The notes under the pieces were generated by a model. That model made no database searches and was not told the origin of the DNA. It saw only the letters and a list, made by a program, of their open reading frames with translations. The position numbers and the translations under genes are program-made. Positions 55,601-63,731 of a stretch of DNA of 64,000 nt are shown in pieces. The number at the start of each line of letters is the position of its first letter. Position 1 is the stretch's first letter. The stretch comes from Pavona decussata (lineage: Eukaryota), in assembly GCA_977016875.1 (NCBI GenBank), contig CDRNST010000226.1, positions 682,001 to 746,000 on the forward strand, in the 5' to 3' direction.

Positions 55601-56823
55601 CTACCAGGAGCATAACATATGCTTTTGAGCTGAGGGATCTGACGCGTTCACTGAATTTAGGCACTGGTCGATTTAATCAGGTAGAAATGGTATAAATGTT
55701 GCGTTCAATAGCATTTGATAACATTCTCAATCGAGACAGCGATTACGAACTACCAGTGTCACAATAGGTCTCATATTTCGGTTACTGGGTGTTAGGCCTT
55801 ATGTTCTCGATTACATTGTTCTACTGAGGTTTCGGAATTAAACATAGTTGTACAATTATCCTCGCCGTTGTCTGTTCCCTGTAAGCGAACAGCGCGTGAA
55901 ATAACCAGCGGTCTTTTTGGACATTTTGTCACGTGACTCACCACCTCAAGTCACGTGACATAAATGAACATTTCACGTTCTTGAAAAAGATTACGAAAAG
56001 GACCGGAAGCTTGCAACGCTTTAAATTGTTTAGATCGTGAAAGCTAATTTGTTTTTCAAACATATGATAACCATTTTTTTATTTTTACAGAATAAAAGCA
56101 GGGCACTCCAGGTATTGCGAGCGCGGCTATACGATATTCAGCGGCAAAAAGTGGAGTCAGAGAGGACTGAAGCCCGGAGAAAACAGGTCAGCATTTTGAG
56201 AATTAAAAGGGCGGTTTTTGGGGGGACATATTCTGTGCATTCTGAAAAAAGAATACACTGAAAAATCTTTATTGTATCTGTTGCCCAGTAACCAAAAATA
56301 TCCAAATAACGAAAGTAAAAGAATCGAATTCTTATTATTGTTTTAAAAGAAAAACATATTTAATTTTTCGAGGTATTCTGATAGGACAGATTTTGGAATA
56401 TATTCAATATGTCACCCCCCCCAAAAATGTGCCATAGTAGTGTGTTTGATGTGGAACATGTTGTTAAAACAAGACTGGTTGCATGACGTGATCTTAAACT
56501 TGTGGGTTTTTTTTATGTCAGATTGGGGGTGGAGAGCGATCAGAGAAGATCAGAACCTACAATTTTTCACAGGTGGGTTTACTCTACATTTCTACTTTAT
56601 TATTATTATTTTTTTCTGTTAACAACTGTATTTACTGTCTTACTCCCTTAAGGGTCGAGTTACCGATCACAGGATAGGGATGACCGCGCATGGCCTAGAA
56701 CTGTTCCTTGAAGGAGAAGATAAGTTACATGAAATGATCCTGGCTTTGCAGTCTCAACATGAAGCTGAGGCTTTACAAGAACTGACAAGTCACTACACTG
56801 CCGGAGAAAAACACGCTAGATGA
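46620..56823 (+). CDS. MTRF1L: Mitochondrial peptide chain release factor 1 (mtRF1a), 14 exons, 409 aa
   Basis: Exons 46620-46704, 47708-47814, 48528-48629, 49855-49959, 50363-50435, 50928-50985, 51385-51454, 52398-52445, 53003-53107, 54083-54138, 54978-55080, 56091-56186, 56522-56572 and 56653-56823 join in frame. The basic, acid-free N-terminus [16 protein letters not shown] resembles a presequence. RF1 motifs are [22 protein letters not shown] (canonical PxT), catalytic GGQ ([11 protein letters not shown]) and [20 protein letters not shown]. Confidence 0.93.
48863..49167 (+). mobile_element. Decayed GA-mismatch hairpin plus body element
   Basis: Hairpin at 48863-48937 (GTGTTTTATCGG..AACCAC-GA...GA-GTGG..ATAAAACAC). 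It ends in GAATTATTAATGAGTTT, like the 32931 element. Confidence 0.55.
51567..51730. mobile_element. Palindromic MITE nested in an older inverted-repeat element
   Basis: TAGACCCTTTGCATAAA...TTTATACAAAGGGTCTA with arms of about 65 bp. Outer arms lie at about 51526-51566 and 51797-51835. Confidence 0.75.
52033..52336 (+). mobile_element. GA-mismatch hairpin plus IR-bounded body element (best-preserved copy)
   Basis: 106-nt hairpin at 52033-52138. Body bounded by TTAGTATAAATCTACTA (52139-52155) and TAGTAGATTTATACTAA (52320-52336). Confidence 0.8.
52485..52776 (-). mobile_element. About 290-bp MITE (TAGAGCGGTTTTC family), inverted copy
   Basis: Reverse-complement homolog of 27700-27989. Confidence 0.8.
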
Positions 56824-58861
56824 CAAAGGTTCTAGCTGAATTTTTTTTAAGATAAGAAACGTCGATACGAATTATTTAGCTGCTTGGATTGCAGTGGGTG
56901 TTTTCTGGAGCAGTAGGTCAAAGCTGGTGAATACAGCGAGGAATTGTTATGGATTGTGGGAGCGGAAGATTTGCAAGATGGACGAGTTTGTATGGTCTGC
57001 ATTTTTAACGAACCTCTATAACTTTTAACGGACCTTTTAAGTCCTCTCACTGCCAAGAGGACCTGAAATGCAAAATTGAGGAAACTTTTACATCGCATTT
57101 GTTGAAATTAATACCATGAAATTCCGAATATAAGCCCCATCCTTTAGGCAATAAATGTTTTTTGTCTTTCTCTCTGTTTAGCCAGTTGTATCAATGGGTA
57201 CCAGCGAATCTTGAGAGATACCTAGGGAAATGCTAGTAGAAGATGGTCATGGTTGGACTCCCGTGGGGAACTCGGATGTTTTCTTTCTCCCCATGCTCGT
57301 CACAAATTAGTCTTTGAGTCTAGTGCGCATGCGCTCTTCACTCTAGCCTGCAATGTGATCAGACAAAAGCGAAATTGCATATGACACCCAAAACGTTAAT
57401 GAAGACAATCAACGTTGAACTTTTGCGGTTCAGGGCCGAGACTCAGAACTTGCGAAATCATACACATGCTCCCGTGAAACATTAATCAGAATGCCAGTCC
57501 AATTGACTCCTAGAAAATTGATAAGACCAGCTAAAGGGAAACATTTAAGAAACCGTTAACCTTCTAGAGTACCTATTAATAAAATTCTCAAAGCATTCAA
57601 AAGGAGAAATTAGAGAGAAAAAGTGAAGATCATTTTGAGCAATTCTGTTCGTAGATCAGCTATTAAACATAAATAAATTGGTTACGAACTTCAAGGCATG
57701 AATGCACTAGACTCGTGTACCAGCGTAGGTAACTATTTTTAATTCAGAATTTATTTTGGGTGAACTGTGCTATTTTGATAACTCTAATGTATTGTAGTAA
57801 CCGTCTAGACATTTTGGAACTCTCAGATACATTCAGGCTGAAATGAAATGTGCTAATCTGTTCACACTGATAAGGGCTTTGCAAATTGCCTGTACTTTCT
57901 TCGTTTACAAACGATGTACGCTAAATTATATCACATTTTATTTTGATCTATCTTAAAGCACGGTAAGCATTTTTTGTTTTCGAATCCTGGCGTTTCATCT
58001 TTTTGTTTAAAATTTCACTGCAATGTAAATTATTTAAAACATGAGCGTTTGTTTTGAATTCCTCATATCTCGCAGTGTTGCATCAATTAACTGCAAAAGC
58101 CAAACTGATTTTTGGTCTAAGAGATTTAGCAGAATAAAATGGGTTTCTGGTATCGTATGCTATCGAAGTGAAACCTTTGTATTGCAGAATTTTTTCTTTC
58201 ACCTTTTCTACAGTCTGTCTTGACTGTCGTAATAATAGCTAATTCCCCTAAAGATTCGCAATCACCTGTTTCAATATAGATGGACGTAGCTGTCCAATTT
58301 ATTTCTGGTTCTTTTGTTTGAATAGTGTTAACGAGTCACATCTTTTCAGTCGAGTTATCGTTTCAGTATCAAATTTCTTTCCAAAGTCCTGGTAAATTAA
58401 AGATTAATCATTTTCATTTCTGACCAGTTATTTATCAGCAAATGTCGGCAAATTTCAAATAAGCGAAATTAACATTAAAACTGTAATATAGTTAAGGCTT
58501 TAATACTTCTTTGTAAATTAGTGTCGAAGATAAACGGAAAGATGTAAGAGAGATTTGCAGTATTAAGCAGCGGCAGATTTAGTTAAAAAAAAATGCGACA
58601 AATTTTTGCTCTGGGCTTTTGTCCCAACAATATTGTTTTTCATAACAAAACACCAGTTAAAAAATCGAATGGTTGGAATAACTCGAAGCAAACTAGAAGA
58701 TGATAGAAATTTATATTTTTGGCAGTTGCAATCTCCATACGAAGAATTTCAACTTTTAAAACCGAATGATACAATAAGCGCTTGAGGTGATAAACCACAG
58801 GCGAGCTGACTTTATTTTTTATTATTAATGTTCCAATTGTAGAAGCCAGGGAAATAACTCA

Positions 58862-59540: not shown

Positions 59541-60647
59541 ATGGCGGAAATTAACGTAGCTCTAAATAATTTTCTCAAGGATCACGGCGAGAGCTTCATT
59601 CTTCACCGGCGAAAAAGACTAATGGATATCGAAAAGATAATCAATCCGATGTTAACGGAAGTGAGAAAAATGGATGAGAAATTTGACTTCGAAACTTTCA
59701 GTGCTAATGGTTTCTATAGCATAAAGTCGCCAAGCCACTACGAGATACTGTTGATTTTTCAAGGAATTGACCCGAAGGAAATTTCTATTGAGGACGGACA
59801 AACCCCACCGGGATTTGCACACGCTAAACTGACGGATAAAAAGATGATTTCGCGCTGGAAATTTTGCAGTGGAAACAGCAATCCCAGCAAAGTTTATATG
59901 TCGGTAAAGATTGTGAAGGAAAAGCTTTATGAGTATGTCAAACGGGTGTTGAATAGTGGCTCTTTTCTCGGAGGCCGAGATGGAAAATTTTGCATCGACC
60001 TGGCCGAAACTCGCCACGACGATGCGATTGTGCTATCGGTCAGCGGGCACGATGCGGAGTCGTACAGCCTCGATCTCATCCCAGCTATTCCTTGTCCTGG
60101 CCGCTGGGTGTTCTCTGCGCACGCTTGGGAGTCCAAGCAACCTGATTTGCCGAGCAAGAAATTGAAAGAGGATATAGTACGGAGTGGAATCCACCTCGTT
60201 GCCAGGCCATCGCCGAGCAAGTCATCTTATCAATGGCAAATCGACTTCCCTGTTCCCATGAGAAAGTTGCTTGAATTGGAATTGGGGTGCCGGACAAAAT
60301 GTCTTCTTATTCTTGAAATTATACTCGAAGACATGCAAGCGGGCAGACGTGGATGCGATCCGTTTCATCTAAAAACACTTCTAATGCGAGTGTCCGAGCA
60401 ATTTCCTGTCAAATCCTTTTGGACCGAAGACAAACTCTCCAAGCGTTTCATGGATGCCATGAAAGAACTCCAAAAATGTCTTTCTGAGAGACATCTTGGG
60501 CACATCTTTATCCCAAACGTAAATTTGCTTCGACATGTCGATAAACTGGCGTTAGAGAACTGCAAAGAAGGAATTCAGAAAGTTCTTGAAGACCCTGTGA
60601 AATTTTTGGCCGAATTTGAACTATTCAATTACTCTACCTCTTTGTAA
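59541..60647 (+). CDS. Mab-21/cGAS-like receptor family protein 1 (intronless CDS, 368 aa), degenerate active site
   Basis: One long ORF with Mab-21 fold motifs: IKSPSHYEILL, DGQTPPGFAHAKL, LDLIPAIPCPGRW, GIHLVAR, WQIDF, GCRTKCLLIL, FHLKTLL and CLSERHLGHIFIPNVNLL. Confidence 0.9.
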   Translation: MAEINVALNNFLKDHGESFILHRRKRLMDIEKIINPMLTEVRKMDEKFDFETFSANGFYSIKSPSHYEILLIFQGIDPKEISIEDGQTPPGFAHAKLTDKKMISRWKFCSGNSNPSKVYMSVKIVKEKLYEYVKRVLNSGSFLGGRDGKFCIDLAETRHDDAIVLSVSGHDAESYSLDLIPAIPCPGRWVFSAHAWESKQPDLPSKKLKEDIVRSGIHLVARPSPSKSSYQWQIDFPVPMRKLLELELGCRTKCLLILEIILEDMQAGRRGCDPFHLKTLLMRVSEQFPVKSFWTEDKLSKRFMDAMKELQKCLSERHLGHIFIPNVNLLRHVDKLALENCKEGIQKVLEDPVKFLAEFELFNYSTSL

Positions 60648-61973
60648 CTAATGAACAGACTGCTTGTTAAACACTACAGTATTGTGTGTGAGTGTGGAGG
60701 AGCTTCTGACAGCTGCCAGAAGAGTATTAAAGAGTAATTACTTGCCTCCTCTCTAGGTCTTTGGGTCAGGTGGTGACGTCATGGAAGATGCGTGCGCGAG
60801 GACTGGGAGAAAGCCAAACTGGACTTCTGTTATTAACACGAATATATAATAGTAACACCGTAAACCAATCAAAAACAGGTCAACCTTGTTAGTTTAGTGT
60901 CTCGTTCCTTTCATTTTATAGCGAACTTAATATTAGGTGACCTTTCATTTTTTTACAGAAAACAAGGATTTTCTGCAAGCTGGTAGTAAATTTCCAGCAC
61001 CTTCATTAACTAAATCAAAACTGAATCCGCTAGCAATGTAACAGACTCATATACGGCTGAACTGGAACTAGCTCGCACTGTCAGCTGGCTTAGGCGAAAG
61101 AAAAATTATTTATGAATATTGTTACTTCGTAATATCGCCTAGTTTGCTTCAGTCGTAAGCATACTATGAATTACATTAATTTTACAAAGCAGTTTGTTTT
61201 AAGGTTGTATTTAGCAACCTTGTTCGTTGACAGTTGAAACAATTGTTTACCATTTTTTCGATCTTAATGTGATCCTCTCTAATGGCTTCGTATGTCGCGA
61301 TTACGATCAATTTAGAACGATGGAATTTTATCACTAAAAGTAGAATTACTCAAATATCCACAACTTTTAGCCCATTATTATTTTCAGCGCGTTCATGTCA
61401 TTTTTATGACATCATTGGATACTGGTAAAAATTAAAATCACTATGGTTGTTTTAACGATATTTCGGCCATATTGGTCAAATTAAGTAATTACGGCTGCAA
61501 CATCTGTAAAATTTTTAAGACAAAACCCATGCAAGGCAATTGGGAACTGAAATTCAGTTAGTATGAACGAACAATAAAAAATAGAGCTATCAAAAATGAT
61601 GGCAATAAAATGATTTCAAACAAAAGGAATGGTTTTGTGTTTATTATCGCGTCTAACGACGATTAAACTTTAATAGTATGATAAATGTTTTATATTCTTG
61701 CTTAGTCTTTGTTCCACACCAATCAAATATTGAATATTCTATGCAAGTGATCAATTAACCAATAAAAAGTTGTCGTTTCTCGCAAGCTCATCGCAATTGA
61801 ATCCTAGTTACAACAACAATTTATCAAAATGATAAATTGTTGTTGGTTTGTGGTCGGTTCTTCCCTAAAACGTGTTGTTTTTCCCACGAAATCGTGTCGA
61901 ATTAGACGGATAATTCCTTCTATATCTTTTCACGATTCTCTTGTTATTCAAGATAGCACAATTCAGAGTGAAA

Positions 61974-63731
61974 ATGGAAGACTCGAATGCTGACGCTAAT
62001 CACTGGTTAAATGGATTTCTTCAGCAAAACTGCGAAGAAGCACGAAAACGTGTTCAAGAGGAACGAAATCTTTGGAACTTAACAAACGAGAATGAAGACC
62101 TTGATCTGTCAGGAATTTTCAACTTTACTGATTACGAAGAATTCAACGGACAGGGTGGTGAGGAAATTTTACCTTCTAAAACTTTTGATTCAGACGATCT
62201 GTCCCAAATGAAGCCTGCGTCATTCGACGATGGTACATCGATTCACGACACTGAACGACGAACAGAACACGACGGTATTCGTCAGAATTTAAATTCCAGT
62301 CCATTGGCTCAAAGAAGCGTGTCGTCGAACGATGACATATCGATTTACGATGAACGACGAACAGAGCTCGACGACATTCAAAATCACAAGGAAATTCAAG
62401 TTACAACTTTGCACGAGGCTCGACAAAGTTTGAATTCCAGTCCACTGGCCTGCACAAGCACATCATCCAACGATGGCATATCTAGTGATGGCGACGATCA
62501 ACGAGCTGCGCACGACGCTGGTCATACGTCTTCGGCAGATCACGTTACGTCAAAGAGCACCCAGGCGGACTGGGATTTCGAAACCGATTTAGTAGAAGTG
62601 GCGAGTATGGACATAGTCCATGCAAAACAACAGCTCCAGCGGGCAATAAACGACTTCAACTCCAATGTAGTGGACAGGGAGCGAGCGGGTTTCAGACTAA
62701 CGATGAAGCAGATCGAAGCAACGGTCAACGAAGTTTTAGAGGAGGTTGAGCGACTCGACAACAACTTCAAGCTACGTAGAATGAGTCCTGATAGCTACTA
62801 TGAAGTGAAGTCGTGGAATGAAATAGACTTACTCATTGCGCTTGAAAACGTCTCGCTGAATGAAGTTGTCATCGAGGATATGAAAACTCCAACTGGCTAT
62901 GCGCGAATACGCGTGGTATCACAGGAAGTGACGTCATTGTCGAATGTACCGTCGTCAGAGATGACCTCAGCCTTGAGCTTGAACATGACGTCATCACACC
63001 ATCAGTTATTTCAGTGGTGTACAGAAACACAGTCGGGTGAGCTGTACCTTTCGCCGAAAAAGTTATGCAAGGAATTCGCGGCGCTAGTTTCCAGAGCGGC
63101 TGGGAGAATTTTAAGAAATGGCTCCAGCGTGAACCGGAAGGGAGTTACTTTTTCTGACACAGAAGCTTCCGTGCCCTTCACAGTCAACCTCATTCCCACG
63201 GTGGAATGTCCACAGACCTGGCCGCTATGCGCTTACTGGCTCAGAAATTACACTAAAAAGTGGCCAGCGGTGGGTGTGAAGGATGACGTCATTCGTGGGG
63301 GGATGCACCTTGTTGCCTTGGTGACGAGCAAGGAGTCTGACCCTTTGTGGCGAATAAACTTTTGCGCCGCACGGCGTCATCTTCTTCGGTCTGATTGTGA
63401 AGGGAAGAAGAAATGTTTACGTATTTTGAAAGTACTCCTGGATAAAGATCTGTCGCGGCCCAAGGGCCTCCTTCCGCTGTACCTTGAGAACATAGTACTG
63501 TGGGCAAGTAGAAAACACTGGCAGGAGGAGGAATGGGCCGAGTGCATGTTACCGGAGAGGTTTTTGGAGATGTTAATGGCCCTGCATAAGTGTTTGGAGA
63601 ACAAAGACTGTTACAATTTCTTTGTGCCAACCATGAATCTCTTCAGCAACTTGAGACCCGAGGTTGTCCAAATGTTAGCTGCGAAAGTGAAGGATGTCTT
63701 GCATGATCCTTTCAAGTACCTAAAGAGTTAA
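61974..63731 (+). CDS. Mab-21/cGAS-like receptor family protein 2 (intronless CDS, 585 aa) with acidic repetitive N-terminal extension
   Basis: First ATG is at 61974; the ORF track start at 61941 is TTG. The C-terminal part (about 365 aa) has Mab-21 motifs: SYYEVKSWNEIDLL, TPTGYARI, LYLSPKKL, VNLIPTVECPQTWP, GMHLVA, WRINF, KKKCLRILK and CLENKDCYNFFVPTMNLF. Confidence 0.9.
   Translation: MEDSNADANHWLNGFLQQNCEEARKRVQEERNLWNLTNENEDLDLSGIFNFTDYEEFNGQGGEEILPSKTFDSDDLSQMKPASFDDGTSIHDTERRTEHDGIRQNLNSSPLAQRSVSSNDDISIYDERRTELDDIQNHKEIQVTTLHEARQSLNSSPLACTSTSSNDGISSDGDDQRAAHDAGHTSSADHVTSKSTQADWDFETDLVEVASMDIVHAKQQLQRAINDFNSNVVDRERAGFRLTMKQIEATVNEVLEEVERLDNNFKLRRMSPDSYYEVKSWNEIDLLIALENVSLNEVVIEDMKTPTGYARIRVVSQEVTSLSNVPSSEMTSALSLNMTSSHHQLFQWCTETQSGELYLSPKKLCKEFAALVSRAAGRILRNGSSVNRKGVTFSDTEASVPFTVNLIPTVECPQTWPLCAYWLRNYTKKWPAVGVKDDVIRGGMHLVALVTSKESDPLWRINFCAARRHLLRSDCEGKKKCLRILKVLLDKDLSRPKGLLPLYLENIVLWASRKHWQEEEWAECMLPERFLEMLMALHKCLENKDCYNFFVPTMNLFSNLRPEVVQMLAAKVKDVLHDPFKYLKS

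Follow-up and report, generated by a model that had tools for sequence, protein, structure and literature searches.

An ancient tandem pair of Mab-21 paralogs lacking the cGLR catalytic signature in the coral Pavona decussata

Two adjacent intronless genes, here termed gene 1 and gene 2, are encoded on the same strand near the end of a 64,000-nucleotide stretch of Pavona decussata DNA (GenBank assembly GCA_977016875.1, contig CDRNST010000226.1, positions 682,001 to 746,000; hereafter the window, in whose coordinates positions are given unless a contig is named). Our comparative analysis of their sequences suggests that this locus most likely harbors ancient tandem paralogs of a cnidarian Mab-21 clade that lacks the catalytic signature of cGAS-like receptors (cGLRs), and that both proteins would act noncatalytically. 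A first-pass annotation of the window, made from its sequence alone, had stressed an apparently complementary loss of catalytic residues between the two proteins. This pattern is attractive but misleading, and it is corrected here. cGLRs are catalogued by an intact active-site motif; their degenerate relatives are as a rule discarded and go unstudied. The degenerate lineage described here is not decaying; it is old, syntenic, and selectively kept from Nematostella to reef corals.

Results

Two Mab-21 proteins with degenerate active sites

Both genes specify proteins of the cGAS-like fold, as the first-pass annotation had recognized. Pfam matches to Mab-21 (PF03281; 65.7 bits, E 7.8e-18 in gene 1 and 65.2 bits, E 1.1e-17 in gene 2) and to Mab-21_C (PF20266; 64.0 bits, E 1.5e-17 and 74.0 bits, E 1.1e-20, respectively) exceed the curated gathering threshold of 24.1 bits, and no other Pfam family scored above the cut-off in either protein. 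According to phmmer searches, the closest solved structures are Sp-cGLR1 (8gjy), human MAB21L1 (5eog), and human MB21D2 (7lt1), followed by cGAS and MiD49/51. AlphaFold2 (AF2) models of gene 1 (predicted local distance difference test score [pLDDT], 85; predicted template modeling score, 0.86) and of the gene 2 domain (pLDDT, 81) point to the same fold. Foldseek retrieved MAB21L1 as the top match of both (template modeling [TM] scores of 0.79 to 0.86 for gene 1 and 0.69 to 0.79 for gene 2) and Sp-cGLR1 as the second; against 8gjy, the models scored 0.80/0.85 and 0.71/0.79, respectively.

The residues of genes 1 and 2 opposite the catalytic positions of human cGAS (Table 1) were assigned by three sequence-based alignments that gave the same result, i.e., phmmer alignments to Sp-cGLR1 8gjy and MAB21L1 5eog, an hmmsearch of mouse cGAS chains with a profile of 19 gene 1 orthologs, and a MAFFT alignment that included 30 paralogs of this genome. 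All three reproduced the residues previously called by eye in both genes and the degenerate state of their active sites. The GS loop is indeed noncanonical in both proteins, but the G-S positions of gene 1 read N-G and not G-F. The zinc thumb is lacking, as had been noted; a scan for the pattern H(x5)CC(x6)C was empty for both proteins.

Published cGLRs are defined by an h[QT]GS motif, an acidic pair [DE]h[DE]h, and a third acid, h[DE]h, 50 to 90 residues downstream (Li et al. 2023, PMC9980059). Opposite the K-G-S of Sp-cGLR1, gene 1 reads A-N-G and gene 2 reads P-D-S, neither of which conforms to h[QT]GS. The acidic pair is H-Y-E-I in gene 1, with the first acid lost, and E-I-D-L in gene 2, which fits the motif. 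Conversely, the third acid fits in gene 1 (L-D-L, 110 residues past E68) and does not in gene 2 (V-N-L). Judged by these motifs, both predicted proteins fall outside the published cGLR definition, gene 1 at the GS loop and the first acid and gene 2 at the GS loop and the third acid. Substituted active-site positions and the missing zinc thumb likewise place both outside vertebrate cGAS.

Substitutions are conserved in gene 2 and drift in gene 1

Complementary loss of catalytic residues does not hold as a conserved property of the pair. In gene 1, most corals have H at the first acid position and three have Q or R; T occupies it in Nematostella and V in other relatives. At the third acid, 17 of the 19 corals have D and two have A, with V in Nematostella and M or H elsewhere. 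Corals carry E or D at the K414 position, where Nematostella has R and K occurs elsewhere. The second acid, E68, is kept in all 19 corals, and this second carboxylate is the only catalytic position left in Nematostella gene 1. At the K439 position, Glu is found in Nematostella and in 17 of the 19 coral orthologs. Since only this coral, L035 (its relative with 89% identity), and P0004 have Lys, the apparent mirror image at K439 is a recent reversal in one small lineage. Other gene 1 motifs, namely EDGQ.P.GF, CSGNSNPSKVY, P.RWV.SA..W, and YQW.I.F, are invariant.

Gene 2 behaves differently. Across 25 sequences from corals to Nematostella, N405 and K486 never vary and E283, D285, and E505 hardly do, and Actinia-type relatives also show this constellation. 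The expectation that the substitutions are conserved across species was thus borne out for gene 2 and not for gene 1. If each protein had lost two of four positions, a mirror image would arise by chance about one time in six. Known enzymes of the cGAS/OAS fold have their whole active site supplied by one polypeptide, and losses in two chains cannot therefore compensate for each other. The mirror-image losses are, as far as these alignments tell, a lineage-specific coincidence and not a mechanism.

From corals to anemones, gene 2 retains E-x-D, N, K, and E almost absolutely, and coral gene 1 retains E68 (19 of 19) and D178 (17 of 19); this retention might alternatively denote an enzyme. Gene 2, and perhaps coral gene 1, would then use E283/D285 with N405, or E68/D178, for nucleotidyl transfer or a related reaction. 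Indeed, whether proteins of the MAB21L1 type produce nucleotide signals has been described as not understood (PMC9980059). We nonetheless consider this alternative improbable. The GS loop is gone in both genes and in all close relatives, the third carboxylate and one triphosphate-binding lysine are replaced in gene 2, and the gene 1 positions vary freely outside corals. Furthermore, tested cGLRs no longer make their product when the active-site motif is mutated (PMC9980059), and MAB21L1, which has an analogous E/E/Q site, displays no nucleotidyltransferase activity (PMC4897736).

Age and synteny of the pair

The tandem paralogy proposed in the first-pass annotation is well supported. The same-strand neighbors are reciprocal best hits in the genome, with 25% identity over ~346 residues and ~140 bits; the next match scores ≤107 bits. 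All close homologs came from corals. We collected 18 coral orthologs of gene 1 at 62 to 80% identity and 79 relatives of gene 2, including those of Acropora palmata, Oculina patagonica, and Nematostella. LOC5514666, the gene 2 ortholog of Nematostella vectensis, has a 365-amino-acid (aa) gene 1 ortholog, XP_001634773, ahead of it on the same strand. In a maximum-likelihood (ML) tree, Nematostella gene 1 joins coral gene 1 (100/99) and Nematostella gene 2 joins coral gene 2 (100/100). Because the Nematostella copies fall in separate gene 1 and gene 2 clades, the duplication is older than the Scleractinia/Actiniaria split.

Both clades, together with a third degenerate paralog of this coral (L032; see below), form a group (99/97) apart from active cGLRs. 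This first tree set the group weakly beside the MAB21L1/2 ortholog and not within the active cGLR radiations; in a second tree, that ortholog grouped with vertebrate MAB21L1/2 clusters, to which genes 1 and 2 were not joined. An exhaustive profile search, which covered 1.84 billion representatives, retrieved 3,239 Mab-21 relatives. The gene 1, gene 2, and L032 types make up the top tier (≥195 bits), no member of which has the GS loop. Named members of this tier are anthozoan (Nematostella, Actinia), except for one fused protein of the annelid Lamellibrachia. Below it are a scyphozoan group (~160 bits) and, at ~140 bits, vertebrate MAB21L2/L1 clusters and a hemichordate "cGLR1."

Conservation of the pair across species, a check proposed along with the first-pass annotation, was confirmed in corals and Nematostella. 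The gene 1-gene 2 same-strand order occurs in four other coral assemblies, Tara coral metagenome scaffolds, and O. patagonica, and P0100 and P0101, one member per clade, are on the same contigs in a further organism. The pair belongs to a microsynteny block made up of a class-I peptide-chain release factor (RF-1 family) gene, gene 1, gene 2, and a PAAT-like gene on the opposite strand. The PAAT-like gene also lies downstream in Nematostella, Oculina, and Acropora-type contigs. The RF-1 neighbor is likewise upstream in Oculina and Acropora-type contigs; on the contig of P0087 it precedes gene 2.

Three Acropora-type contigs (L039, L046, and the contig of P0087) carry an intact gene 2 flanked by the RF-1 and/or PAAT-like genes. 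A tblastn search of these loci detected neither gene 1 nor a remnant of it within 7 to 10 kb upstream of gene 2, which probably reflects a lineage-specific loss in Acroporidae.

In the O. patagonica assembly GCA_052425735.1 (L040:3782-4880), one frameshift in the variable loop divides gene 1 between two frames, and the annotated model runs gene 1 together with the RF-1 gene upstream. Given P0007, a near-identical protein found intact in read-derived contigs, an assembly error is likelier than a broken gene.

Purifying selection on both genes

The two open reading frames were recovered intact at the coordinates in Table 1, and purifying selection maintains both genes, as had been surmised from their integrity despite strong divergence. 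Pairwise Nei-Gojobori (NG86) ratios of nonsynonymous to synonymous substitution rates (dN/dS, omega) are well below 1, at 0.13 to 0.24 for gene 1 and 0.13 to 0.29 for gene 2 (dS, 0.24 to >1). Within gene 2, the ratio is 0.11 to 0.17 in the Mab-21 domain, ~0.2 in the N-terminal 45 residues, and 0.37 to 0.61 in the acidic Ser/Thr-rich linker. Acropora-type gene 2 compared with that of other corals yields an omega of 0.13 to 0.21. Because gene 2 thus persists under constraint without a syntenic gene 1, an obligate heteromer is unlikely.

These data bear on the earlier proposal that genes 1 and 2 are a heteromeric pseudo-nucleotidyltransferase pair of decoys, sensors, or regulators of cGLR-STING signaling, in which the losses represent a division of labor. 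It would be favored by the tandem same-strand order held from Nematostella to stony corals, by purifying selection on both genes, and by the large set of predicted active cGLRs that the genome offers for regulation; coral cGLR and STING radiations are known as well (PMC9980059). We still deem it unlikely. The complementarity is not conserved, a single-chain active site cannot be rebuilt from two proteins, gene 1 is missing from its syntenic place on three Acropora-type contigs whose gene 2 is still constrained, and the first tree sets the clade outside the active cGLR radiations. Moreover, we found no immune-linked domain, neighbor, or literature for the pair, and nothing that supports a link to cGLR-STING. 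The literature covered, which is incomplete, contained nothing on this pair or on cnidarian Mab-21 pseudoenzymes beyond a general cGLR survey and the MAB21L1 structure paper.

Other Mab-21 paralogs and the MAB21L1/2 ortholog

The genome contains at least 70 Mab-21 domain matches, several of them in tandem arrays, and many of the paralogs are intronless. G-S is kept at the GS-loop columns of 26 sampled paralogs, most of which also keep [DE]x[DE], D, K, and K. These canonical paralogs are predicted to be active cGLRs, to which genes 1 and 2 are clear exceptions. The other noncanonical sampled paralogs are L032, the divergent L010, and a gene on contig C24.

The C24 gene matches human MAB21L1 from end to end (E 3.7e-122, 411 bits). 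Its catalytic columns read N-F-E / E / K, with Val at the K439 position. Human MAB21L1 scores 70 bits with gene 1 and ~70 bits with gene 2. This difference, together with the second tree, rules out genes 1 and 2 as the MAB21L1/2 orthologs, and the MAB21L-like developmental role formerly offered as an alternative has no such orthology behind it; the true ortholog is on C24. In a broader version of this idea, genes 1 and 2 would be cnidarian orthologs of bilaterian MAB21L3 or MAB21L2 that share cell-fate or developmental roles. NCBI names the Stylophora and Nematostella gene 1 orthologs "mab-21-like 3" and the Acropora, Oculina, and Actinia gene 2 orthologs "mab-21-like 2," the language-model neighbors are chordate mab-21-like 2 and 3 clusters, and MAB21L1 is the top structural match. 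We regard these names and neighbors as similarity labels, and orthology of this kind as very unlikely. The coral has a separate MAB21L1/2 ortholog, genes 1 and 2 are only 22 to 23% identical to MAB21L1, and in the second tree they do not group with MAB21L1/2. In addition, vertebrate MAB21L2/L1 clusters reach ~140 bits versus ≥195 bits for the cnidarian tier, and no vertebrate MAB21L3 cluster occurs among the 30 clusters looked up. Overall, nothing supported orthology with any bilaterian gene, in trees that lacked vertebrate MAB21L3 and MAB21L4.

L032 has ortholog clusters of its own (P0115, P0107, and P0111). It shares with gene 1 a His at the first acid, and its K439 position is Glu. Mab-21 arrays were located at C120:2709786-2770130, C91:2380867-2448220, C171:867780-925415, and C125:733916-947558. 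At least 12 copies, which are ~650 aa in size and have long N-terminal regions, make up the C120 array, and the four C125 copies have identical scores, suggesting a recent segmental duplication. Sampled members of the C120 and C91 arrays show the canonical GS/D-x-D/D/K/K and are predicted active cGLRs.

Locus layout and gene models

The features of the locus are collected in Table 1. The spacer between the genes contains no open reading frame of at least 60 aa, and spacers in related loci span ~1.2 to 2.8 kb (1.2 kb in L038 and 2.8 kb in L043). Gene 2 lies in an open frame at 61941-63731 (+) that would encode 596 aa from a TTG; the ATG at 61974 is the likely start. Its N-terminal motif, where residues H10, W11, L12, G14, F15, E21, E22, and R24 are near-invariant in the coral alignment, matches no Pfam family above the cut-off. 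The linker that follows is gappy and length-variable among relatives, and the first 200 aa of the protein have an isoelectric point of 4.4.

The insertion in the gene 2 N-lobe contains Met-Thr-Ser repeats (…TSLSNVPSSEMTSALSLNMTSS…). It is present in all coral orthologs and much longer in Nematostella. AF2 predicts it to be disordered, with pLDDT of <50 at domain-model residues 119 to 143 and 190 to 199, and it could be a phosphorylation or O-glycosylation region. The RF-1 gene call in Oculina L040 carries PF03462 and PF00472.

Table 1. Features of the tandem Mab-21 locus, related genes, and residues opposite the catalytic positions of human cGAS
Feature	Position	Strand	Description
Gene 1	59541..60647	+	Open reading frame; ATG start; intronless coding sequence; 368 aa plus stop
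Gene 1 nucleotidyltransferase-core domain	59721..60275	+	Residues 61-245; Pfam PF03281
Gene 1 C-terminal helical domain	60288..60578	+	Residues 250-346; Pfam PF20266
Intergenic spacer, gene 1 to gene 2	60648..61973	.	1.3 kb; both genes on the same strand
Gene 2	61974..63731	+	Intronless coding sequence; 585 aa from first ATG plus stop
Gene 2 conserved N-terminal motif	61974..62108	+	Residues 1-45, HWLNGFLQQNCEEARKRVQEERNLWN
Gene 2 variable acidic, Ser/Thr-rich linker	62109..62558	+	Residues 46-195
Gene 2 Mab-21 domain	62559..63728	+	Residues 196-585; Pfam matches
Ser/Thr-rich insertion in gene 2 N-lobe	window 62900-63050	+	Gene 2 residues ~310-345
Upstream neighbor, class-I peptide-chain release factor (RF-1 family), last exons	56079..56829	+	tblastx colinearity with Oculina L040
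Downstream neighbor, PAAT-like	contig C226:755068-755211	-	Opposite strand to genes 1 and 2
L032, third degenerate paralog	C143:3710208-3711182, L032:1625-2806	-	393 aa; S-S / H-F-E / D / K / E
MAB21L1/2 ortholog of this coral	C24:1098105-1098647, L001:1147-2253	-	Human MAB21L1 match
Human cGAS G212-S213	gene 1 N56-G57; gene 2 D273-S274		Gene 2 in 585-aa numbering
Human cGAS E225-x-D227	gene 1 H66-Y-E68; gene 2 E283-I-D285		
Human cGAS D319	gene 1 D178; gene 2 N405		SLDLIP (gene 1); TVNLIP (gene 2)
Human cGAS K414	gene 1 E259; gene 2 K486		LILE (gene 1)
Human cGAS K439	gene 1 K278; gene 2 E505		FHLKT (gene 1); LYLEN (gene 2)

Discussion

We favor a scenario in which neither protein of the pair performs nucleotidyltransferase catalysis and both bind or scaffold partners in the manner of MAB21L1/2 or MiD49/51. 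The E-x-D … N … K … E site of gene 2 might still hold a metal or a nucleotide without turnover, and its conserved N-terminal motif (HWLNGFL…EERNLWN), along with the acidic linker, is predicted to mediate partner binding. In gene 1, the constrained surface would lie away from the former catalytic positions, because these drift while other motifs remain invariant.

Several points weigh against this noncatalytic interpretation. Noncanonical catalysis could explain equally well why E, D, N, and K are so strictly conserved in gene 2. The long-kept tandem arrangement could reflect functional coupling, which a noncatalytic role of each protein does not require. The residue equivalences derive from sequence and profile alignments. 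Finally, public contigs over the locus also span the spacer and are probably genomic rather than transcripts, and nothing matched the locus in two metatranscriptome runs. The Logan and Tara contigs with orthologs are metagenomic DNA, and L047, which is colinear with genomic DNA, lacks a poly(A) tail.

A more elaborate scenario, for which we see very little likelihood, would make the two genes coregulated partners that tune or gate the large cGLR-STING network of the coral, with gene 2 as a nucleotide- or metal-binding pseudoenzyme endowed with an N-terminal docking motif and gene 1 as a ligand-blind adaptor. Acropora would then have rewired this control after the loss of gene 1. If true, these would be the first dedicated pseudoenzyme regulators of cGLR signaling. 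Under the preferred noncatalytic reading, Mab-21 pseudoenzymes are already a known kind, and the finding is otherwise an ordinary one.

Comparison with characterized members of the fold helps to place the pair. Sp-cGLR1 from Stylophora pistillata (8gjy) is its best sequence match in the PDB (E 2.3e-22 for gene 1 and 1.5e-21 for gene 2). It shares the fold with both proteins and also comes from a coral with a large cGLR repertoire, but, unlike genes 1 and 2, it keeps GS, E-F-D, D, K, and K. MiD49 and MiD51 (MIEF) are cGAS-fold proteins that bind rather than catalyze, through ADP binding and Drp1 recruitment. Their sequence match is weak but significant (E ~1e-6 for gene 2), distant, and limited to the C-lobe, and, unlike them, genes 1 and 2 have no membrane anchor or evidence of a mitochondrial role. 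Human MB21D2 (7lt1), the third-best PDB match by sequence, has the C-lobe motif LSRPK..P..L....LWA in common with gene 2; it is a poorer structural match (TM score, ~0.6) and is listed with a complete putative active site (PMC9980059).

A close parallel is offered by human MAB21L1 and MAB21L2 (5eog and 5eom), which, like genes 1 and 2, have the two-lobed Mab-21 fold with neither a canonical GS loop nor a zinc thumb. The MAB21L1 site consists of E73, E75, and Q169; no nucleotidyltransferase activity was detected for this protein, which binds nucleotides and, weakly, single-stranded RNA (PMC4897736). Set against E283, D285, and N405 of gene 2, this triad is similarly incomplete, with an amide as the third residue in both. 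Gene 2 has frozen a MAB21L1-like site of two carboxylates plus an amide. The resemblance has bounds. MAB21L1 retains both lysines, whereas gene 2 has Glu at the K439 position and gene 1 lacks the first acid and the K414 lysine; unlike MAB21L1, gene 2 also bears a 195-residue N-terminal extension and the Ser/Thr-rich insertion. What MAB21L1/2 do biochemically is itself an open question, one relevant to disease. A genetically tractable cnidarian paralog with this site architecture is available in Nematostella and provides another route to what the site does.

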